A DNA stretch of 64,000 bases, from NCBI RefSeq assembly GCF_011386835.1, contig NC_088807.1:3472001-3536000 (forward strand), given 5' to 3'. A program made the position numbers and the translations under genes. Under the pieces are notes generated by a model. That model was not told the origin of the DNA, did no database searches, and saw only the letters and a list, made by a program, of their open reading frames with translations. This document shows, one piece after another, positions 16,943 to 64,000 of this stretch; the stretch's first letter is position 1, and each line of letters opens with the position of its first letter. This DNA is from Chrysemys picta bellii (Eukaryota).

Positions 16943-17146
16943 ATGTTCAGCAAGAAGAAGAAACGCGTTGAGATCTCTGCTCCCTCAAACTTCGAGCACC
17001 GGGTCCACACTGGGTATGACCAACAAGAGCAGAAGTTCACCGGGCTGCCGAGGCAATGGCAGGGCATCATCGAGGAGTCGGCAAAGCGACCCAAGCCACT
17101 GGTGGATCCCGTGTACATCACGGCTATTCAGCACGGCTCGCAGAAG
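16943..17146 (+). CDS. PAK4: PAK4 coding exon 1 (204 nt; exon starts at 16923). Contains basic NLS, CRIB/PBD and the RPKP autoinhibitory pseudosubstrate.
   Basis: [24 protein letters not shown]...KRPKPLVDP...SQK; acceptor ccctctcag|gtc at 16922/16923; Kozak caccATG; donor AAG|gtaggt. Confidence 0.97.
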
Positions 17147-36780: not shown

Positions 36781-38312
36781 TAACAAGGAGTCCGGTGGCA
36801 CCGTAAAGACTAAAAGATTTATTTGGGCGTAAGCTTTTGTGGGTAAAAACCCCACTTCTTCAGATGCATGGAGTGAAAATTACAGCTGCAGGCATTAAAT
36901 ACTGACACATGAAGAGAAGGGAGTTACCTTTCCAAGTAGAGAACCAGGGTTGACAAGGCCAATTCAGTCAGGGTGGATGTGGTCCACTCCCAATAATTGA
37001 TGAGGAGGTGTCAATACCAAGAGAGGGAAAATTGCTTTTGTAGTGAGCCAGCCACTCCCAGTCCCTATTCAAGCCCCAATTGATGGTGTTAAATTTGCAA
37101 ATGAATTGTAGCTCAGTAGTTTCTCTTTGCAGTCTGTTTTTGAAGGGTTTTTTTGTTCAAGTATGGCTACTTTTAAATCTATTGTTGAGTGTCCAGGGAG
37201 ACTGAAGTGTTCTCCTACTGGCTTTTGTATGTTACCATTCCTGATGTCCGATTTGTGTCCATTTATTCTTTTACGTAGAGACTGTCCAGTTTGGCCGATG
37301 TACATGGCAGGGGGGCATTGCTGGCACGTGATCACATATATCACATTAGTAGACGTGCAGGTGAATGTGCCCCTGATGGTGTGGCTGATGTGGTTGGGTC
37401 TCTGATGGTGTCGCTAGAGTAGATATGGGGACAGAGTAGGCAACGGGGTTTGTTACAGGAATGGGTTCCTGGGTTAGTGTTTCTGTGGCGTGGTGTGTAG
37501 TTGCTAGTGAGTATTTGCTTCAGGTTGGGGGGTTGTCTGTAAGCGAGGACTGGCCTGTCTCCCAAGGTCTGTGAGAGTGAGGGATCGTTTTCCAGGATAG
37601 GTTGTAGATCGTTGATGATGTGCTAGAGAGGTTTTAGCTGGGGGCTGTACGTAATGGCCAGTGGTGTTCTGTTATTTTCCTTGTTGGGCCTGTCCTGTAG
37701 TAGGTGACTTCTGGGTACGTGTCTCGCTCTGTCAATCTGTTTCCTCACTTCCCCAGGTGGGTATTGTAGTTTTAAGAATGCTTGATAGAGATCTTGTAGG
37801 TGTTTGTCTCTGTCTGAGGGATTGGAGCAAATGCGGTTGTATCTTAGGGCTTGGCTGTAGACAATGGATCGTGTGGTGTGTCCTGGATGGAAGCTGGAGG
37901 CGTGTAGGGAAGTATAGCGGTCAGTAGGTTTCCGGTATAGGGTGATGTTTGTGACCATCATTTATTTGCACGGTAGTGTCCAGGAAGTGGCTCTCTTGTG
38001 TGGACTGGTCCAGGCTGAGGTTGATGGTGGGGGTGGAAATTGTTGAAATCTGGTGGAATTCTTCAAGGGCCTCCTTCCCGCGGGTCCATATGATGAAGAT
38101 GTCCTGCAAGTAGAGGGGCGCTAGGGGGCGAGAGCTGAGGAAGCGTAGTTCTAAGTCAGCCATAAAAATGTTGGCATACCGTGGGGCCATGCGGGTACCC
38201 ATAGCAGAGCCGCTGACTTGAAGGTATAAGTTGTCCCCAAATCTGAAGTGGTTGTGGGTGAGGACAAAGTCACAAAGCTCAGCCACCAGGTGTGCCGTGG
38301 CCTCATCAGGGA
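36781..38312 (-). mobile_element. 5'-truncated Penelope-like retroelement (partial RT, GIY-YIG endonuclease, pLTR)
   Basis: Minus-strand frames FVLTHNHFRFGDNLYLQVSGSAMGTRMAPRYANIFM (RT), YRKPTDR...SQALRYNRICSN, and IYVITCQQCPPAMYIGQTGQSLRKRINGH (GIY-YIG). Frameshifted and internally deleted. Confidence 0.93.
36827..36868 (-). ncRNA. Minimal type I hammerhead ribozyme of the Penelope pLTR, mutated
   Basis: Minus strand: GCAU-CUGAAGA-A-GUGGG-GUUUUUA-CCCAC-AAAAGCUU-ACGC. The core GAAA reads AAAA and stem I has one mismatch. Confidence 0.7.
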
Positions 38313-50032: not shown

Positions 50033-50559
50033 CTGGGTTCTGTCCCCATGCTGGGAGGAGTGTGGGGGTGTATTGGGTTCGAGAGGGGAGCTGGAAGCCA
50101 GGACTCCTGGGTTCTGTCCCCGTGCTGGGAGAGGCGTGGGGGTGTATTGGGTTCGAGAGGGGAGCTGGAAGCCAGGACTCCTGGGTTCTGTCCCCGTGCT
50201 GGGAGAGGCGTGGGGGTGTATTGGGTTCGAGAGGGGAGCTGGAAGCCAGGACTCCTGGGTTCTGTCCCTGTGCTGGGAGGGGCGTGGGGGTGTATTGGAT
50301 TCGAGGGGGGAGCTGGAAGCCAGGACTCCTGGGTTCTGTCCCCGTGCTGGGAGGGGCGTGGGGGTGTATTGGGTTCGAGGGGGGAGCTGGAAGCCAGGAC
50401 TCCTGGGTTCTGTCCCCGTGCTGGGAGGGGCGTGGGGGTGTATTGGGTTCGAGAGGGGAGCTGGAAGCCAGGACTCCTGGGTTCTGTCCCCGTGCTGGGA
50501 GGGGCGTGGGGGTGTATTGGGTTCGAGAGGGGAGCTGGAAGCCAGGACTCCTGGGTTCT
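50033..50559 (+). repeat. 74-bp minisatellite, about 7.1 copies, derived from a SINE-like 5' head
   Basis: The motif TATTGG(G/A)TTC recurs at 50071, 50145, 50219, 50293, 50367, 50441 and 50515. The array runs into a MIR-like SINE continuation. Confidence 0.95.
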
Positions 50560-52116: not shown

Positions 52117-52590
52117 ATTACTGTAGTGCCTAGGAGGCCGTTGTGCCAGGCGCTGTACGTTTGTATTGCTATTGGGTGTATTATGGTAGCACCTAGGCGC
52201 CAGTCATGGAGCAGACCCCATCATGCCATGCGCTGTATATTATTATCACTATTTATTACGTGTATTATGGTGGCACCTAGGATCCCACTCACGGACACGG
52301 ACCCCATTATGCCATGTGCTGTATATTATTATCATCACTATTTATTATATGTATTATGGTAGCACCTAGGAGTCACAGACATGGACCCCATTGTGCTAGG
52401 CAGGGGATACATTTTTACTGCTATTAGGTGAATTACAGTAGCACCAAGGTGTCCCACTCATGGTCCGGGACCTCACAGAGCTAGGTGCTCCCGTAATACA
52501 CCTAATAGCAATACAAATGTACAGCGCCTGGCACCTTGGGGCATCTAGGTGCTATCGTAATAGACCTAATAGCAATATCCCAGTGCTGAC
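52117..52590. repeat. Degenerate tandem array of about 65-90-bp units (tattacggtagcacctagg...ggcgctgtac family) with inverted terminal units
   Basis: About five forward units, then reverse-complement units from about 52481. Confidence 0.8.
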
Positions 52591-54442: not shown

Positions 54443-55531
54443 GATAGCATCAAAACGGGTCTGTTTATAGATGTTTAGCAAGCGCTCGAAGAATGTTTTG
54501 AGCTATACTTGGAAGTCGGCCTCCTATAGCGATGTCTGTCAGGGGGATGATATTTTTTACCAGTCTAGCTATACTGGTATAGTCTGCTAGTCTGTAGGTG
54601 CAGTTATGGGGGATATAGGTGCCTCACACCTGGATAGCTTATTCCTCGTCCCATATAGGAATAGTGCTACGCTCTAGCTGGTGGAGTTGCTTTAACTAGG
54701 CCAGAATAGTTCAAACAGGCCAACTTTAAAGCGCAGTGAAGCATTTCAAGAATGGAGCACTCTGTTATTAATAGCCCGAAACCCCGGTGGCACAGTTATA
54801 AACAACTTACTAACCCACGGGGTCGAACTGATTGAAAACGCAAATTTTTAACTAAGAAAAATTGGGGAGGAAATGAAAACTGTTTGGTTTCCATAACAAA
54901 ACTTTCCTAGACTTTTTTTTTTTTTTTCCTTTCAGTTTTTGGCCACCGAAAACTGAGGAGAGGGGACAGTTGGAAGCCAAAAAGATGTTAGTTTTTTTGC
55001 CAACGAAACCCCCCAATTTTGTATTTTATTTATTTATTTATTTGGGGGTTTGGCTGATCGAAAAGTGACGTTTTTAAAGGGCCGGAAGCCAAAAGCGTCT
55101 TAGGGTTTTCTTCCAAAACCAGAACCAAAACGCCCAAAAGATTTTGAGGGAAAAAGGACAATTTCAGGGAAACAAAAAGTTTCTTCCCCCCAAAAAACCA
55201 TGTAGGGGTGGAAAAAAAAAATGTGGGAAAGAAGAAACTAGCATGAAAGGTTCATAGACCCACTGTGCTCATCTGGTCTGACCTGGATAACCCAGGTCCT
55301 AGGACTTCTCTGAGTGAATCCCTGTTCCAACGAGGTAGCTCTTTTAAAAACCGGGCCAGGTGGTGGGTTTTCTTTTGCCAAAGTGTGTCCCACCCCAGCC
55401 CTGATTGCCCCTGGGGATGTCCTGTCCAGCACCGTCACCAACCCCAAACCTGGACGGGTTAGAACTTGCCCTGGGAGATGCCCTTTAGTTGCTCCTTGGG
55501 GGCCTTTCCTGGCCTCTTGTCCCCGTGGGAA

Positions 55532-55752
55532 GGGCTGGCTCAGGCGGGGGAGGGAGAAGGGGGGCAGTAGGGGGCTGGCTCAGGCGGGGGGAGAAGGGGG
55601 GCAGTAGGGGGCTGGCTCAGGCGGGGGGAGGGGAGAAGGGGGGCAGTAGGGGGCTGGCTCAGGCGGGGGGGGCAGTAGGGGGCTGGCTCAGGCGGGGGGG
55701 GGAGAAGGGGGGCAGTAGGGGGCTGGCTCAGGCCGGGGGGGGGGGGAGAAGG
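55532..55752 (+). repeat. G-rich VNTR, 6 units of about 29-42 bp (GGCTGGCTCAGGCGGGGGG-GGAGAAGGGGGGCAGTAGGG)
   Basis: GGCTGGCTCAGGC is counted six times; the G-run lengths vary. Confidence 0.9.
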
Positions 55753-55769
55753 AAATTGACTCGCGCTGG

Positions 55770-56018
55770 GAATTACCCCCCGCCCGCCCCACTCGGATTT
55801 TCCAGCCGCCCCTAGGGCGGAGCCGCCGCTTTAAAACCCGCCCCCGGGCCGGCGCCGGCTCCGCTTTGCGAGTTGCTCCTGGTGCCTGTCGGAGCCGGAG
55901 CCGGAGCTGCCGGGGGGACTCGCCCCGCGCCCCGTGCCCTGCGGGGTGACCCCGGCTCCGGAGCGGCCCCGGCCTGGAGGGGAGACGCGGCCGCCGTGAT
56001 CCGGAGCGCCAGGACCCG
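55770..56018 (+). promoter_or_regulatory. CpG-island promoter and non-coding first exon of the SUSD6-like gene
   Basis: Dense CpG; GC boxes (GGGCGG at 55815, CCGCCC near 55780 and 55838); TATA-like TTTAAAA at 55830-55836; donor CCG|gtgagg at 56018/56019; no ATG in the exon. Confidence 0.75.
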
Positions 56019-56890
56019 GTGAGGGGGGGTCTCTCCGGGGGCGGAGGGGGACCCCAATGGGGAGCAGCAGGGACCCCGGCTGGGGCTGGGGCGAGAGACT
56101 GGGGGGTAGAATCTCTAGGGGCGCGGGGACCCCGGCGTGGGGTCTCCTGGGGCGCAGACGGGGGACCCCAGATGAGGTTGGGGTGCAGAAGTTGGAGAGG
56201 GGAAGAACCTTCGGGGTGCAGGGACCCCGGGATGGGGGTGGGGTCTCCAGGGGCGCAGGGATGGGGTTTACTGTCTTTCTTTCTCCAGGGGTGCAGGGAT
56301 CTATTTGTCCCCATTTGAAGAGAAATGCCTGACCCCCTCCACTCCCCCGAGCAGCGGGCTGGGACCGGGACCCTGGGCATATCGGGGTGTGTGGATGCCC
56401 CTTGACAGTGGGGTGGGGGAATCGCTTCAGCTGTTGCTGGCTGGATCCCCCTTGAGACGCCTTGTTGGCCCGGGGCAGGGAGAGCCCTTTGGGGGCGTGG
56501 GGGTGTAGCCTTGAATCCTGTCCTTAACTCTGGCCCTGAGGCTAAGTGGCTCCTGGCATGGCCAGCCCTTTTTGGGGGGACCTGGGTGGGGGGGTCCCTC
56601 CTGCTCCAGGCCGCTTTGAAAGCCAATAACCTGTGGAGCCCATGGCTGCTCCCCATTTCCCTGCGTCTCAGAGTGCCGGGAGGCCGGGTGGGTGGCCAAG
56701 CCAAAGGGGAGATCTGGGTGCCCCCTGCCCCCCCGGCTGCAGAGAAAGGAGCTGTGACTTACCAGGGCACAGGCTGGCGAGTAGGGGGTGGCAGGTGGCC
56801 CCCATGTCCAAATCCAGCCCCAGCTGCTAGAGACCAGCGGTTATCAAGCCCCGTTTATCTAAAGCATTTTTGATGAACCTCTAACTAAAC

Positions 56891-57570
56891 CAGGGGTGGG
56901 CAAACTTTTTGGCCCGAGGGCCACATCTGGGTATGGAAATTGTATGGCGGGCCATGAATGCTCACGAAATTGGGGTTGGGAGTGGAAGCGGGTGTGGGCT
57001 CTGGCTGGGGGAGCGGGCTCTGGGGTGGGGCCAGAAATGAGGCGTGCGGGAGAGGGCTCAGGGTGGGGATAGGGGGTTGGGGTGTGGGTGGGGGCATGAG
57101 GGCTCTGGCTGACGATGCGGGCTCTGGGGTGCAGGAGGGTAGGACTGAGGGGTTCGGAGGGTGGGAGGGGGATCAGGGCTGGGGCAGGGGGTTGGGGTGA
57201 TAGAGGGGGTCAGGGGTGCAGGCTCTGGGTGGCACTTACTTCAAGCAACTCCCGGAAGCAGCGGCATGTCCCCCCTCCAGCTCCTACATGGAGGCGCAGC
57301 CAGGCGGCTCTGCGCCCTGCCCCATCTGCAGGTGCCATTGGCCGCGGTTGCCGGCCAATGGGAGCTGTGGGGGCAGCACTTGGGGTGGGGGCAGCATATG
57401 GAGCCCCCTGGCTGCCCCTATGTATAGGAGCCGGAGGGTGGACACGCCGCTGCTTCCAGGAGCCGCGGCATGTGCAGAGTGGGGCAAGACCCAGACCAGG
57501 AGCTCAAGGGTCGGATTAAAACATCTGAAGGGTCGGATGCGGCCCCCGGGCCATAGTTTGCCCACCCCTG
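56891..57570. mobile_element. Non-autonomous hAT (Charlie/MER58-like) element, 680 bp
   Basis: Perfect 16-bp TIR CAGGGGTGGGCAAACT / AGTTTGCCCACCCCTG; perfect 8-bp TSD aactaaac. Confidence 0.95.
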
Positions 57571-57751
57571 AACTAAACCCATTTCTCCAAAGCCAGTGGG
57601 TGTGTCCCTCCAGGTTCTGACCCATAGCTTGGTACTGGGAGGGAGAGGGGTGGTGCTCACTTTGTAAGATGGATTATCAAGTCATACAGGATAGTAACGT
57701 GTTGGCTTATTACAGCTGGTTCTGCAGCTCTGGGCAGAGGCTACCGGTGAG

Positions 57752-57860
57752 ATGGTGAAGGCGCCGGGATGTCCCGGGCTGCGCCGGCCCTCGGGTTACC
57801 TCCCCACGGCTCTGTTCTTCGCGGCACTCTGCGGCTCTGATGCTGGCCTCAGGAGGAAAG
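57752..57860 (+). CDS. SUSD6-like gene, coding exon 1 (signal peptide)
   Basis: MVKAPGCPGLRRPSGYLPTALFFAALCGSDAGLRRK; strong Kozak gagATGg; acceptor candidates at 57715 and 57727; donor AAG|gtactg in phase 1, matching the sushi exon. Confidence 0.7.
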
Positions 57861-57929
57861 GTACTGGCTGGTTCTCACTTTCCAAACCTGCTCGTCTGCC
57901 TTTCCCTCCCCACCTGGGTGAAACCTTCC

Positions 57930-58390
57930 CATCAAAATGTTTTTGATGGAAAATCGGGTATTCAACAATCGGGTATTCGACAATTTTTTGGCAAAAAAAA
58001 ATCTGCCTCCCCCTGGAAAACTTGGATGTTTTTTTAACTGAAGAACTGAGCACCTGAAAAGCAGAATATTTTCATTTGGCTAGGCTGCTGTGGGACCTCA
58101 TGGGAGTTGTAGTCTGGGTGTCCCCTGCTCCTGTTCTCCTCTATAGGCCAGTTAGACTACACTTTCCATGATGCAACATGGTGTCCGTTCTTGGACACTG
58201 GAGGTGGGGAATTATGGGCGATCCTGGCTGTGGTGTATCATGGGAGTTGTAGTCCGGTCAGGCAGCCCGGCCTATAGAGGAGAATGAGGAGCATGAGGCA
58301 CGTGAACTACAACTCCCATGAGGTGCTGCAGTAGCATTTCCGAATTGAAATATTTGGGTGCTTGAATCAAAAATGTCCAAGTGGAAAAAC
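57930..58390. mobile_element. Probable MITE remnant with internal inverted repeat
   Basis: 58096-58150 and 58267-58323 are reverse-complementary (cctcatgggagttgtagt...ctcctctataggcc). Confidence 0.6.
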
Positions 58391-59266
58391 CTATTTCCTG
58401 ACCGTCTCTGCAGCCTGCCCCATAGCTCCTGCCTTGGTCCCCAATGCCGCAGCTCTAGGAATAGGGGGGTGAGAGCTGGGCTGGCCGCTGGTTGGTCTCC
58501 CACCCCTCCCGCCGTAGATCGAGCCAACCCCGTAGCTAAGATGCCAGTAGCTGGCTGAAGTTAGGTGCAACGGCTGGTGCTGGGGGGAGCTCTCGGGAGA
58601 GAGCTTGATGGAGATGAGGAACGTAAAAGCCCAGACAGCTTCGCCGTGGGTTTGCGGGCAGCGGGCATTTCGTGGTTGGTGAGTCGCTACTTCTCCATCC
58701 CTTCCATGGAACCAGGAAGCCCCCTGCCATGCTGGTCTTGTGGCCAGCCCGAATCAGGCTGAAATCTGGAGCAAAGCTGGGGCGGGCGGGCGTCCTTCCC
58801 AGAGCAGCCAGACGCCGCAGGGAGCGGCATGGGGGACTCGGCGCCTCCGGATCTAACCTCTCTCTGCCCTGGGGGAAATTTGGGGTGAGGGGAGACGATC
58901 CAAGGGCAAGAGGGAGGAAAAAGAAGGGGCTGGAAGCATGCTGGGGTCCGGAGGGAGGGGAGAGAGAAACCAGCACGCTGCCCTTTGCCATCCCTGCGAG
59001 ATAAGATATCCCCATCCTAGAGAGGTCATAGATCACCAGTGACTCTGCTGGGGAGAGATGCCCCATCCCTTTGCTCTAACCCGCTGGACCTCCCCTCCTC
59101 GCCCCTCCCAGAGCTGGGGAGAGAACCCAGGAGTTCTGGCATCCAGCAACCCCCCTACTCTAGCCACTAGTCCGCATCATGCTTCACTGCCTTCTTACCC
59201 CACTGAGGGGCTCCTGGTCCCCCTTGCCCCATTTTAACCCTCGATGTGCCTGTTCGTCCCTTCCAG

Positions 59267-59479
59267 ATTGCCAGTTCCCGGACCCTTCCGATCACACTAC
59301 CTACAGGTGCGCGTCCCCGGCGTGCAAGCTATCTCTGGGCAGCGGCGCGTTTAAGGCTGGCTCCATGGTGCAGCATTTCTGCGAAGCCGGCTACACCCTG
59401 GCCGGCCACCCTGGGGTCTCTGTCTGCAAGGGCGGCCAGTGGAGCGTGCTGAAGCCGGTCGTCTGCAAGCCCCTGGAAG
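59267..59479 (+). CDS. SUSD6-like gene, sushi/CCP-domain exon (213 nt, phase 1-1)
   Basis: DCQFPDPSDHTTYRCASPACKLSLGSGAFKAGSMVQHFCEAGYTLAGHPGVSVCKGGQWSVLKPVVCKPLE: six Cys plus the CxxGYxLxG and CxxGxW motifs; acceptor ccttccag|at; donor AAG|gtcagt. Confidence 0.9.
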
Positions 59480-59708
59480 GTCAGTGCGTGCCCAGCCCGG
59501 CTGTCCCTCTCCTGCTGCGATGGGCAAGGACCTCTGCCAGAGACGTGGCACCTACTGGACCCCTGCTGCAGCTCGCAGGGCCTGTTTGCCCAGCCCGGCA
59601 GCAGCGGCGAGTGTAGGCAGATGTGGTGCTGCCCTGGTGCTGAGAAATGGGTGCTGGGGGAAATGCAACCTCTGTGCCGCTTACGTCCTCATCTGTATTA
59701 TCATTGTA

Positions 59709-60105
59709 TATTGCAGTCGCACCTAGGAGCTGCCATCCATGCCCCTGGCTCCCATTGCGCCAGGCGCTGTACGTTTTTATTGCTATTAAGTATATTACGG
59801 TAGCGTGTGGGTGCCCCAGTCATAGACCACACTGTGCCAGGCGCTGTACAGTATGATTGCTATTAGATGTATTACGGTAGCACCTAGGCCCCCAAGTCAT
59901 GGCCCAGGTCTCCATTGCACCCGGCGCTGTACGTATTTACTGCTATTAGGTGTATTACGGTAGCGTGTGGGTGCCCCAGTCATAGACCACATTGTTCCAG
60001 GCACTGTACAGTTTGATTGCTATTAGGTGCATTATGGTAGCACCTCGGACCCCACATGGCCCAGGTCCCCATTGTGCCAGGCGCTGTACAGACACCGAAC
60101 AAAAA
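59709..60105 (+). repeat. Tandem array with alternating 84/77-bp units (about 160-bp higher-order repeat)
   Basis: Unit starts at 59709, 59793, 59870, 59953 and 60030. Confidence 0.85.
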
Positions 60106-60868
60106 GAGGGCCCGACAAAGCCTAAAATCCAGGTATTAGCCCCATTCTGCAGCTGGGGACTGGAGGCCCAGGTTTACCAAGGTCCTTCGATGCCCGACTC
60201 CCGTGTAAAATCTGAGCCTTAGAGTGACTCGCCCCAGGCCAGCACCCTCCCCACCGTGTCCCGTCTCTGAACCCCGGGCCGACGGGCGCTAACCAGAGCT
60301 GTGGATTCATTCAGGCTCCGGCAGGAGCTCTGGCTCCCGGGCCCACCACCTCCCTAGGCGTCAGAGCCTGAGCCGTTATGTCTACACGGCTGCATTTAGC
60401 GCCGGAGCTCCAGGCCGGGTGGGAGTGGGGTTCTGAGACAGGCTGGGTAGACGGACCCACCCAGGCGCTTGCCAGCGGTCGCTCCCAGGCACGCCTTTGC
60501 CTTCACTCAGGAAACTGCGTCCCGCAGCGCGTGGGCGTCTCCCTGTGGCCGGGCTGCGTTTCCTCTCCGTTACGCTCCTCTTCTGGGGGGGGGTGGGGAT
60601 GTGTGAAGCTGCTGGTGGAAACTTCCTCCTGCTCCGCGACCGGGGTACGCAGCCCGTGTGACACCTGCTGGGTGGGGGGGAGGCGGGATGGTGGACGCAC
60701 AGAGGAGACCCCCAGCCATCATGGCCCCATCTGCCCCTGAGCTGTTCCCTCGCCCCCTGCCCTCGCTGGCATCCCCATCTCTGTTCCAGGAGGGATGCTG
60801 GCACCCACAGAAATTGGGGTGTGCTGTCCCCGCTCCAGACCACTAACCTATTAACTAAAGAGAGGCTG

Positions 60869-60985
60869 CGTGGCCTAGTGGATAGAGCACTGCGACGCGG
60901 GAGACCTGGTTTCTGTTCCCTTGGCCAGCTGGATGACCTTGGACAAGTCACCGCATCGCCCTGTGCCTCAGTTTCCCCACCCACC
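60869..60985 (+). mobile_element. MIR/CORE-SINE relic
   Basis: gtggcctagtggatagagcactg...gaccttggacaagtcac...ctgtgcctcagtttcccc. Confidence 0.65.
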
Positions 60986-61383
60986 CTTTGCCTATTTAGA
61001 CTGAGCTGTGAGAGACCGGTAAGGGGGGGCGGGCAGTGTCCCTGGGTCTGGGCGGCGCCTGGCACAAGAGGGGGACCCCCATCTTGGCTGGATTCTGTGC
61101 AACCAAGGTCCCCCAGATCTTGGTGTTGCCAGGTGCGGTGGGATTTCCCTCTATAGAGGCACCTGCCTTCCTGGCACCTGAGAGCCATCTAGGGCCTGGA
61201 GGGTGCATGTCTCCCATCTGGGTTTCGAGTCCCTCTGGCTGCTTGTTGTTTAATGCATCCCCTTGGGGGTCGGGCTCGAGTTTGGGGGGGCTGGTACCGG
61301 AGATCTGGCCGCCTTGAGCTGCAGGTGGCTGTGAAATGTCCCAGCTGCTGTGTGTGACCCGCTGACCTTCTCCTCCCCCCCAG

Positions 61384-61531
61384 GATCCCCGGTGCCTCAC
61401 CCCGGCTCGGTCATCACTGTCTCCTCCATCCCCATGGTGGCTGCGGCCTCGGTGACGGCATCCGCCCTGCTGCTGGTGGCCATGGTGTGTGTCCTGGTGG
61501 GGCCGAAACCCTGCAGCCACAGGTGCTGGAG
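61384..61531 (+). CDS. SUSD6-like gene, transmembrane exon (148 nt, phase 1-2)
   Basis: GSPVPHPGSVITVSSIPMVAAASVTASALLLVAMVCVLVGPKPCSHRCW; acceptor cccccag|ga; donor GAG|gtgagc. Confidence 0.88.
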
Positions 61532-61875
61532 GTGAGCTCCGCCGCCTTACTGGGGTGTGGGGGGGGGTTCCCCGGCTGCAGCAACGATGCTGGGGGGGCA
61601 GGTGCAAGCCTGTGCTCCCTTCTCCCATGGGTTGATGCTCCCCCAGGGGTCCAGCCCCCATCCTCTGTCTCTCCCCTTCCTACCCAGCCCCTCGGGACGC
61701 GTGGGTCTGACTCGCCCTCGGGCCTCGACTCATCTTGGCCCGTTCAGTCCGTGTGACCCCGAGGCGGGACTAGGGGGCACCACGCTGCAGGGGACGGGGC
61801 TGCGCAGAGGGTGCTGGGGAAACTGACGCCCACCGAGAAGGGAAGTGACTTGCGCAGGGTCAGTGACAGGACCAG

Positions 61876-62057
61876 GGCTCTCAGCTCCCCTGCGCTAACC
61901 ACTAGCCCCCACACTCCTCCCAGAGCCAGGGAGAGAACCCAGGCGTCCTGGCTCCCAGCCCCCCCCGCGCTACCCACTAGCCCCCGCACTCCTCCCAGAG
62001 CCAGGGAGAGAACCCAGGCGTCCTGGCTCCTAGCCCGTGCTCTAACCACTAGACCCC
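61876..62057 (-). repeat. 72-75-bp tandem repeat of a tRNA-like SINE head, about 2.3 copies
   Basis: ACTAG recurs at 61901, 61976 and 62048. The minus strand reads (G/T)CTAGTGG(T/G)TAG...GCCAGGACGCCTGGGTTCTCTCCC. Confidence 0.85.
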
Positions 62058-62197
62058 TTGCACCCTACCCCCACTACTTCCTATTGTCATGGCAGTCCTA
62101 CCCCCCCTTGCAGTGGGGCCCCAGCGGGGGGGGGAGAAGGGTCTGGGGCCCTGGGGCGCAGCTGTGAACTTGACGAGGTCTCCCCGTCCCTGAGCAG

Positions 62198-62522
62198 GTG
62201 GTACGAGCCCATGGAGGAGTCCGAGGTGAGCACCGTCGACAGCTGCCCAGTGCCGCTCCCGTCTTACGAGGAGGCCGTCTATGGCTCCCAGGGGTGCCCC
62301 GTGCCGCCCGCTCCCCCCACGCCGACGCCCCTCATCCTCTCCAGGGGCCTGGCCCCCCCATCGGAAACAGCCGAGCCCTGTTGGAGTCCGGAGGCCGCCA
62401 CCCCGCCCCCTTCCTACCAGGAGAGCCAAGCGGCAGCTGCGGGCGGCTCCGGCCTGGCCCGGCCCACGGTGCCCCCTGCCTGGTTCCTGTTCCCCGGGGC
62501 TGCAAAGGACCCGCGCAGGTAG
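62198..62522 (+). CDS. SUSD6-like gene, final coding exon (cytoplasmic tail with LPSY and PPSY)
   Basis: (R)WYEPMEESEVSTVDSCPVPLPSYEEAVYGSQGCPVPPA...TPPPSYQES...KDPRR*; acceptor tgagcag|g in phase 2. The four coding exons total 795 nt = 264 aa plus stop. Confidence 0.88.
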
Positions 62523-64000
62523 CCGGGGGACTGGGGGTCCCCGGCAGGGCCCCGACACTACAGCAGAGACGCCTCATTTGAAGCACATGCAGCCTGCTCC
62601 ATCTTTTAACTTGCTGGGTGGGGGGGGAGAGGACCATTCCCCCCCTCCCCAGTTACTCAGCATCTCGTGAAGCTGATGGGACCGAAGCAGCCCCCCTCGG
62701 AGGGGCGTGTGCAGCCTTCCGCCTGGATGGGGGCCCCCGGGGCTGAGGGACCGGCCTTCTGCCCCCCCCCAAGCTAACGGCTCTGTCTCCGAGGGGCCGA
62801 CCTTTGCCAGCCGGCTGGTAGCCGCCGGCTCAGCGTGTCCTGACCTCTCTGCACTGCCGCCCCGTGGGATCCCACTTTTCCCTGCCCCCCCCCCCCCCCC
62901 CCCCACCGGGGTGTCAGTTCCCAGCAGAGCCGTCAAGGGTTAACTCAGGGAACGGCTGCCACCTCCCTCCAGCTGTGAGGATGGGGGGGGGGGGGCAGAT
63001 TTCTCCCCCCCCCCCCCCCCCCCCCGGGTTCCTAATGCTCTGGTGGACATCCCCTGGGCTTCTTCCATTCTTGGGGGGGCCTCCTCTGTGGTCAGCAACC
63101 TCCCCCCACCCCCCAAAAAGAGACCCTGCTCCCCCCAGCTTTCCTGTGCTCCCCTCACCCCCCCCCGCCACCGTCCGTGGGTCCCTGCTGCCCCCTGCTG
63201 GAAGGAAGGAGCCCTGCCCTGTGTGTGTGTCTGGGTCCCCATCCATGACCTTACTGGAGGGGGTGAGCCCTGCCCCCCCTCCCATGTCCGTCTGTCCAGC
63301 TCCATGCACTTTGTGTGTGTGTGTGTGTGTGGGGGGGGGGGATTAAAACAACCCAGGCTGCTGTATCCCTGGGCCATACTGATGCCCACCCAGGTCGCAG
63401 GTGCTGCTCCATGGCACCGGGGCTGGCAGGCAGGGGCAGTTGCACCCACATCCCAGCTGGGGGTGCCGTAGCTGCACCCTGCCTCCCTAGCGCTCCCCTG
63501 GGCGGGTGGCTCTTGTCTCCTTCCCCCTCCCTGTCCCTGCCCTTCCCACCCCCATCACCCGCGCTCCCTGGCTTGGCTACAGGGGGGTGAGCTGGCACCC
63601 CTGGTGGGGGGAGCAGAGGGTGGGGGGAAGCGGCTGCAGGTTTGAATCCCGGCTGCCCCCAGGCCCATCCCGCACAACAACCGCTGGGTCCTTGGCGGGT
63701 GCTGGGCAGGGGTGAATCTTGGGCTATTCCTCGACGGGGGGCCTGGCTTCCTGTCTCCGCCCCCCCCCCCCGCCCTCCTCTCCCCCTCGTCACATGTCAC
63801 AAGGGGGCTTGTGGCTGCAAGTGTCCAGTGGCCCAGGGGCCAGGTAACCCCACGAAGCTCCTGTTAAAGCCGGGTCAGGTGCTAGGGCTGACGTGCCAAC
63901 ACATGGGCACAAACACACGCGCGCGCCTGCCCGCCACGGGGCTGGTTTTGCACAAGCTTGATTGTTCTAGGTTGGTATTTAATGACTCTGGGTTTGTTTT

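Follow-up and report, generated by a model that had tools for sequence, protein, structure and literature searches.

SUSD6 (also known as TMPS, DRAGO or KIAA0247) acts with TMEM127 and WWP2 to remove major histocompatibility complex class I (MHC-I) from the cell surface, and SUSD4 plays a comparable part for AMPA receptors (GluA2 degradation). The binding of SUSD6 to WWP2 needs Y177 of its LPxY (LPSY) motif, SUSD6 and TMEM127 jointly relieve WWP2 autoinhibition, and NDFIP2 needs several PY motifs to relieve it (PMC12720080). For the binding of SUSD4 to NEDD4-family ligases, an LPxY motif is essential and a PPxY motif contributes in part (PMC7972451). Here we analyzed a 64,000-nucleotide (nt) stretch of Chrysemys picta bellii DNA (contig NC_088807.1, positions 3,472,001 to 3,536,000 of the forward strand; the window), in which an earlier note made from the sequence alone had placed a third member of this family downstream of PAK4. 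We consider it quite probable that this SUSD6-like gene is a functional five-exon gene, a paralogue of the SUSD4/SUSD6 family next to PAK4, which would have originated in an early duplication and would serve as a PY-motif adaptor.

Splicing of 57752-57860, 59267-59479, 61384-61531 and 62198-62522 gave an open frame of 795 nt, with 264 codons and a stop, interrupted by introns that all have GT/AG borders and lie in phases 1, 1 and 2. RNA contigs on 57000-62900 were taken from four public runs (three studies) and read after correcting a '+2' cut offset of the contig layout. The coding joints 57860/59267, 59479/61384 and 61531/62198 were all matched exactly, and two single contigs, X5 (1342 nt) and X9 (1153 nt), crossed all four coding exons into the 3′ untranslated region (UTR). 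The earlier note had proposed four GT-AG coding exons for 264 amino acids (aa) behind a non-coding exon and had left the joints to RNA-seq; its model turned out to be exact to the base, with all junctions present in RNA. The window gene is a real, expressed and intact five-exon gene.

All its parts lie on the forward strand. The G+C-rich promoter region (55770-55885) holds a TTTAAAA box at 55831-55837, and the 500-nt bin that covers promoter and exon 1 (55500-55999) is 75.6% G+C. The transcription start is bounded by RNA that reaches at least ~55885, which gives non-coding exon 1 (55885-56018) a minimal 5′ end and an exact 3′ end. This exon was seen in RNA of one run: contig X5 carries 134 letters 5′ of 57715, the last 30 of which have a unique window match at 55988-56017, and these letters, together with a GT at 56019-56020 and an AG at 57714-57715, place the end of exon 1 at 56018 and its joint to exon 2 at 57716. 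Because exon 1 lacks an ATG, the ATG at 57752, with G at both -3 and +4, is the first start codon. Exon 2 (57716-57860) comprises the end of the 5′UTR and the segment for residues 1-36, including the putative signal peptide, and is joined to 59267 in contigs X1, X5 and X9. Exon 3 (59267-59479, phase 1-1) encodes the entire sushi (CCP) domain, including the motif CASPAC at 59308-59325, and has RNA joints on both sides. Exon 4 (61384-61531), with joints in all four runs, encodes a stalk, the predicted transmembrane helix (61428-61496) and a cysteine-rich juxtamembrane part. The coding part of exon 5 (62198-62522), supported by its frame and by family conservation, encodes the tail with LPSY at 62256-62267, PPSY at 62406-62417 and the stop at 62520-62522. 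The 3′UTR (62523-63365, approximate end) was followed in contig X5 to 62897 plus 235 letters further, extends past 63130 and contains an ATTAAA at 63342-63347. RNA differed from the window by A-to-G changes at 57826, 59365 and 61460 in several runs and studies, which is most simply read as variation between individuals.

Pfam recognized a Sushi domain in the translation of exon 3 (E 5.8e-6; score 27 bits, cut-off 20.7). The orthologue from Chelonoidis, which is 87% identical to the window protein, was modelled with AlphaFold2 on an alignment of 24 family sequences. The model contained an N-terminal hydrophobic helix at residues 14-28 (a probable signal peptide), a beta-rich sushi domain at residues 37-107 (predicted local distance difference test score 70-89), a transmembrane helix at residues 123-145, and a low-confidence, disordered tail with short helices right after each PY motif. 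On this model the protein is predicted to be a type I, single-pass membrane protein with a signal peptide, one transmembrane helix and a cytoplasmic tail. In a Foldseek comparison with the PDB every top row was a CCP module (C1r, MASP-2, factor H CCP19-20), with no match at E <= 0.001; the weak values, from 1e-3 upwards, are expected because a 60-residue domain sits in a 264-residue query. A sequence search of the PDB likewise gave only weak CCP matches (E >= 0.007). The signal peptide, single sushi domain, transmembrane helix and PY-motif tail named in the earlier note were all recovered by Pfam, the structural model and the motif positions.

The tail motifs LPSY and PPSY occupy residues 177-180 and 227-230, and L177, P178, Y180, A183, P227, P228 and Y230 were invariant in the 24 family members; the rest of the tail, unlike both PY motifs, barely aligned over these species. 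In the sushi domain C38, C75, C90 and the tryptophan were invariant, with the fourth core cysteine, C103, conserved in less than 90%, and the transmembrane-helix cysteine C143 was again invariant. The extra cysteine pair in CASPAC (residues 51-56) is at least 90% conserved in the family at both C51 and C56, and it aligns on CHPxPC of SUSD6. The earlier note was right that this pair is present, but it is not peculiar to the window gene, since SUSD6 also has the C-x-P-x-P-C signature.

Comparison of the family alignment with a SUSD6 alignment by hhalign gave a probability of 99.9% (E 1.8e-34) over 170 collinear columns, which begin at the first sushi cysteine and extend past LPSY. This bears out the homology to SUSD6 from sushi domain to tail that the earlier note had proposed. 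LPSYEEAVYG aligned column for column on the SUSD6 LPSY motif (SUSD6 L174-Y177). Both proteins have a type I layout, one membrane-proximal sushi domain with C-x-P-x-P-C, a transmembrane helix, a tail with ...VxLPSYEEAVYG... and then a hydrophobic 'LVLS' patch. The window family differs from SUSD6 in an invariant PPSY/PPPY about 50 residues downstream, which SUSD6 does not have, and in a different transmembrane helix with an invariant cysteine followed by juxtamembrane cysteines. It also lacks the invariant SUSD6 C-terminus ...DDIPLLKEA, which is encoded by its own 26-nt last exon in SUSD6 and is absent from all 24 family members. The window family evolves far faster as well, with a mean column identity of 36% in its 24-sequence alignment compared to 76% in that of SUSD6. 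With SUSD4 the window protein shares two WW-binding tail motifs, LPxY and PPxY, but SUSD4 has four sushi domains and the window protein one, which argues against SUSD4 orthology.

To turtle SUSD6 the window protein is just 31-33% identical over ~150 aa. A search with frog SUSD6 returned canonical SUSD6 proteins of ~300 aa in those turtles, lizards, salamanders and coelacanth that also carry the SUSD6-like gene. Mammals, birds, alligator, tuatara, snakes and over 20 frogs yielded further ones. Both genes were present in nine species (Carettochelys, Pelodiscus, Gopherus, Ambystoma, Pleurodeles, Heteronotia, Paroedura, Lerista and Latimeria), and the Carettochelys assembly has them on two separate chromosome records, CM066714.1 and CM066698.1. 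A maximum-likelihood tree (LG+C20+F+G4, 184 columns) was computed for 69 proteins, comprising 29 members of the family, 32 SUSD6-type proteins of gnathostomes, 3 proteins from cyclostomes and, as outgroup, 5 from invertebrates (including amphioxus, tunicate and nemertean). The SUSD6-like family formed one clade (support 98/97), and SUSD6 together with the lamprey and hagfish genes formed the other (97/96). Inside the family clade the order resembled the species tree, with a split between ray-finned and lobe-finned vertebrates and turtles beside squamates. As the earlier note had held, the window gene is not the SUSD6 orthologue; it belongs to a separate paralogue lineage of the SUSD4/SUSD6 family that is older than the split between ray-finned fishes and tetrapods. 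It is barely credible that it should instead be this genome's orthologue of SUSD6 or SUSD4, or else a decaying transcribed copy without function. The automatic names SUSD6, SUSD6-like and SUSD4-like would suit the first of these, but a true SUSD6 (~302 aa, with the 76% mean column identity given above) is found in the same species, the identity to turtle SUSD6 is low, and the clades are separate.

The 120 hits listed for the search with SUSD6 included no true gnathostome SUSD4, and none was recognizable in the best 150 hits of the profile search described below. Teleost proteins labelled 'SUSD4-like' (Chanos, Stigmatopora, Odontesthes, Monopterus) were considered as stand-ins for SUSD4 and rejected, as they fell inside teleost SUSD6. 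The size of SUSD6 varied among lineages, from ~480 aa in teleosts and 362 aa in a coelacanth isoform to ~300 aa with one sushi domain in tetrapods. The extra length of the teleost protein presumably represents further sushi domains, and SUSD6 may have been shortened by the loss of such domains in the stem lineage of tetrapods.

The exon layout connects the two lineages. Coding exons of the SUSD6-like gene measure 109/213/148/325 nt in turtles, 100/213/154/295 nt in a skink and 100/204/145/340 nt in a teleost, always with phases 1, 1 and 2, and four turtles spanning both suborders have the same exon sizes and an intact frame. The coding exons of Carettochelys SUSD6 measure 121/198/139/425/26 nt, and its first three introns match those of the SUSD6-like gene in position and phase. 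These shared introns point to a DNA-based duplication and not a retrocopy; a retrogene origin was ruled out on the same ground.

The family was collected by a first search with the stop-free frame around exon 5, followed by searches with the full-length turtle proteins that it returned. Two protein searches define its range: a word-seeded search with a tortoise protein, and an exhaustive profile search of 1.84 billion representatives, of which we consider the best 150 of 752 hits. Members were found in teleosts, gar, sturgeons, bichirs, coelacanth, caecilians, salamanders, squamates and turtles. The window protein shares 90% identity with its counterpart in Gopherus, 69% with that in the pleurodire Emydura, 37-41% with lizard, salamander and caecilian proteins and 31-34% with fish proteins. 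The earlier note had described the gene as retained in turtles; this holds for turtles, but the restriction to them was too narrow.

Automatic models from NCBI carry the label 'SUSD6-like', as the earlier note had guessed, or else 'SUSD4-like' or 'SUSD6'. The turtle proteins of Chelonoidis, Gopherus, Carettochelys, Emydura and Pelodiscus (263-264 aa; the Pelodiscus model 316 aa) are labelled 'sushi domain-containing protein 6-like', and those of Lepidochelys and a Chelydra fragment are unnamed in databases. The label '6-like' is also found in salamanders (Ambystoma, Pleurodeles, Lissotriton), the caecilian Microcaecilia, the lizards Heteronotia and Paroedura, Latimeria and sturgeons. The lizards Elgaria and Sceloporus carry '4-like', Lerista and Phrynosoma are hypothetical proteins, and the gar Lepisosteus and the teleost Menidia have an 'uncharacterized' protein. 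Bichirs (Polypterus, Erpetoichthys) and the teleosts Parambassis, Hippocampus, Betta and Dunckerocampus bear the plain label 'SUSD6', and Anabas bears 'CCP domain-containing protein'. The 'susd6' of bichirs and several teleosts (e.g. Parambassis XP_028276446.1) is an orthologue of the window gene and not SUSD6; the true teleost SUSD6 is the ~480-aa protein. Full-text literature searches, including 'SUSD6-like', 'susd6l' and the full RefSeq name, gave no paper on such a gene, in agreement with the earlier note, which knew of no functional characterization. With automatic models in dozens of genomes the gene is not new to databases; what is new is its recognition as a family with a defined synteny, motif layout and loss pattern. 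Among these models, isoform X1 of Pelodiscus has an N-terminal extension of ~50 aa common to no other turtle, and that of Phrynosoma has a C-terminal extension, which we read by eye as sequence of the downstream FBA gene.

The gene upstream in the window, on the same strand, is PAK4 (coding exons 16943-44120). Its exon at 16943 encodes a PBD domain (E 7.6e-18), and its kinase exon scored best on PAK4 in the PDB (86 bits, compared to 79 for PAK5 and 70 for PAK6), so the neighbour named in the earlier note was correct. In the skink Lerista the order is a PBD and kinase gene of the PAK4 type (740 aa), the SUSD6-like gene, an FBA gene of the NCCRP1 type and syncollin. An FBA gene follows 3-4 kb downstream on the same strand in Chelonoidis, Emydura and Carettochelys, and in the teleost Parambassis a PAK-type gene lies directly upstream on the same strand, with a HIF-alpha-type gene downstream. 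In sturgeons the adjacency was read from a mis-fused 'PAK4' gene model that carries the transmembrane segment and tail of the SUSD6-like gene, and the Phrynosoma extension, as we read it, would likewise come from fusion with a neighbour, here the FBA gene. Since the PAK-type neighbour is kept in the skink, the teleost and the sturgeon fusion, the two genes have been adjacent since the origin of bony vertebrates, and in reptiles the SUSD6-like gene sits between PAK4 and NCCRP1/SYCN. This is the synteny that the earlier note had proposed to check across vertebrates. A published gene table of the human 19q13.2 amplicon contains PAK4, NCCRP1, SYCN, IFNL genes, LRFN1, GMFG, SAMD4B, PAF1, MED29, ZFP36 and PLEKHG2 and no SUSD gene (PMC2937017), in agreement with the earlier note.

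Constraint on the protein was measured as the ratio of nonsynonymous to synonymous substitution rates (dN/dS, or omega). Pairwise Nei-Gojobori estimates between four turtles ranged from 0.39 to 0.61, with the signal-peptide exon least constrained and omega ~0.5 in the sushi exon. A Goldman-Yang codon model gave omega 0.41, significantly below 1, and setting omega to 1 cost 22.9 log units (2ΔlnL 45.8, p = 1e-11). The dN/dS analysis that the earlier note had named as a check therefore speaks for a constrained protein, and the gene clearly evolves fast under purifying selection, with constraint centred on both PY motifs. A pseudogene was rejected on the intact frames and the likelihood test on omega. 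Decay, the second form of the scarcely credible alternative mentioned above, could appeal to the fairly high omega, but the frame is intact in the four turtles and omega = 1 is rejected.

The window protein is likely a PY-motif adaptor for NEDD4-family ubiquitin ligases, because it has LPSY in the aligned position and an invariant PPSY/PPPY 50 residues on. In such a mechanism the sushi ectodomain, the transmembrane segment or both would engage a membrane cargo or partner; LPSY and PPSY would recruit and help activate a NEDD4-family HECT ligase of the WWP2, NEDD4 or ITCH type; and the cargo, once ubiquitinated, would pass to lysosomes. Having two PY motifs, the protein would be more like SUSD4 than like the single-motif SUSD6, and for the same reason it may depend less on a co-adaptor such as TMEM127. 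We speculate that the cysteines in and next to the transmembrane helix serve palmitoylation or an intramembrane contact. Ndfip-type adaptors (NDFIP1/2, TMEM127) are similarly small membrane proteins with cytoplasmic PY motifs that bind WW domains, of which motifs the window protein has two. There is no sequence relationship, however, and Ndfips are multi-pass proteins without an ectodomain, so that the likeness would be a functional one.

The same architecture could belong to a cell-surface receptor or complement-type regulator led by its ectodomain, in which the PY motifs steer only the protein's own turnover. The sole globular part is a CCP module, the best structural matches were complement proteins, an omega of ~0.5 in the sushi exon is common in immune surface proteins, and SUSD4 reportedly modulates complement. 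C3b/C4b binding by complement regulators needs several CCP modules, however, and the window protein has one; its strongest conservation lies in the PY motifs and the transmembrane and juxtamembrane part, not on the sushi surface. In addition, mutation of the SUSD4 PY motifs left its own protein level unchanged (PMC7972451). We regard this receptor role as improbable and prefer that of a PY-motif adaptor.

Neither of the two protein searches returned a SUSD6-like member from mammals, birds, crocodilians, frogs, cartilaginous fishes or cyclostomes. SUSD6 of these groups, in contrast, was readily recovered. The expectation of the earlier note that mammals have no member agrees with this result for annotated proteomes. 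An archosaur copy at least 50% identical to the turtle proteins should have shown in the word-seeded tortoise search. Absence from these searches points to a loss of the SUSD6-like gene in mammals and, as it seems, in archosaurs and frogs too.

With regard to origin, we favour, with moderate confidence, the whole-genome duplication that the earlier note had inferred, which would also have given rise to SUSD6 and SUSD4. The rooted tree fits a duplication early in vertebrates, between the invertebrate chordates and the radiation of gnathostomes. The paralogon presumably comprises ACTN4/1/2, TGFB1/3/2, SIPA1L3/1/2, ZFP36/ZFP36L1, SAMD4B/A and GMFG/B. On CM027306.1 of the lamprey Lethenteron reissneri a calpain gene is immediately followed downstream by a SUSD4/6-type gene; human SUSD4 is beside CAPN8/CAPN2, and CAPN12 near PAK4 on 19q13.2. 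This lamprey gene occurs twice on CM027306.1, with identical protein and 7.2 Mb apart; the second copy stems either from a recent duplication or from the assembly.

A number of observations weigh against an early origin and against the joint reading of which it is part. A tree that joined the family to gnathostome SUSD6, without the cyclostomes, was 5.9 log units worse and was not rejected by the approximately unbiased (AU) test (p-AU 0.198), and the long family branches could pull the family artificially toward the root. The tree was computed without a bona fide gnathostome SUSD4, so the three-way relationship lies outside it. No shark, ray or cyclostome member was found in the searches described, though an ohnologue could have them. 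G+C-rich bird microchromosomes of the 19q13 type are a known blind spot, and the absence in birds may reflect their poor assembly and not loss. For a conserved adaptor omega is high, at 0.4, and the ectodomain may be heading to a lineage-specific role. Finally, for every family member the adaptor role is deduced from motifs and precedent.

Some of these points would also suit a later copy of SUSD6, segmental or translocated, that was made at the DNA level in the bony-vertebrate ancestor, diverged rapidly and came to lie beside PAK4. A clade of the family with gnathostome SUSD6 alone is not rejected by the AU test, the family branches are 5-10x longer than those of SUSD6, which favours long-branch artefacts, and neither a cartilaginous-fish nor a cyclostome member was among the best 150 of 752 hits. 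The introns common to SUSD6 are also what any DNA-based duplication would leave. The best tree, on the other hand, sets the family outside the clade of SUSD6 and cyclostome genes (97/96), and Carettochelys has SUSD6 and the SUSD6-like gene on separate chromosomes. The region with PAK4, ZFP36, ACTN4, SAMD4B and GMFG presumably has paralogues around SUSD6 on human 14q. We hold such a late duplicate to be unlikely and retain the whole-genome duplication as the favoured origin.

The family represents a further old branch of SUSD4/SUSD6 with its own layout, LPSY plus PPSY, a cysteine in the transmembrane helix and no DDIPLLKEA end, and offers a natural comparison for the effect of one versus two PY motifs on ligase activation. 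Its recognition corrects the annotation of fish genes labelled 'susd6', which belong to the window-gene family, and adds a putative, dated gene loss to the well-studied mammalian PAK4–NCCRP1–IFNL interval. A more specific scenario, which we put forward tentatively and consider possible but doubtful, is that the gene is an ohnologue from the two rounds of vertebrate genome duplication (2R), the third of the SUSD4/SUSD6 set to survive in vertebrates, and encodes a dual-PY adaptor that would activate WWP2- or NEDD4-type ligases independently of TMEM127 and tune the amount of immune receptors, MHC-I among them, at the cell surface in fishes, amphibians and non-avian reptiles. If this were true, independent losses in mammals, archosaurs and frogs would mark a rewiring of the pathway that tunes immune receptors.

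The window also contains several repeats and other elements. Between the 3′ end of PAK4 and the SUSD6-like gene, there are 7.1 tandem copies of a 74-bp unit with 97% identity (50033-50559), which yield long spurious open reading frames (ORFs) in three frames. A G-rich tandem array of ~40-bp units (5.6 copies, 55532-55742) lies directly upstream of the promoter. Two intronic stretches, 58970-59166 and 61876-62121, are copies of an interspersed repeat with the core ...CCAGAGCCAGGGAGAGAACCCAGGCGTCCTGGCTCC..., on which RNA-contig depths summed to between 800 and 20,000 in all of the four runs and chimeric joints were frequent. The repeat family is abundant and transcribed, and it is probably a short interspersed nuclear element. 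Tandem units of 77/160 bp in intron 2 (59751-60091) resemble an 89-bp tandem unit 7 kb upstream (52176-52371). Both hold the motif GTATTACGGTAGCACCTAGG and look like one dispersed repeat family. Within a PAK4 intron, a string of ORFs on the minus strand (37069-38286) includes one that matched the GIY-YIG nuclease family above the Pfam cut-off (E 2.1e-5), and the ORFs beside it look like reverse-transcriptase remnants. This combination suggests a fragment of a Penelope-like retroelement.

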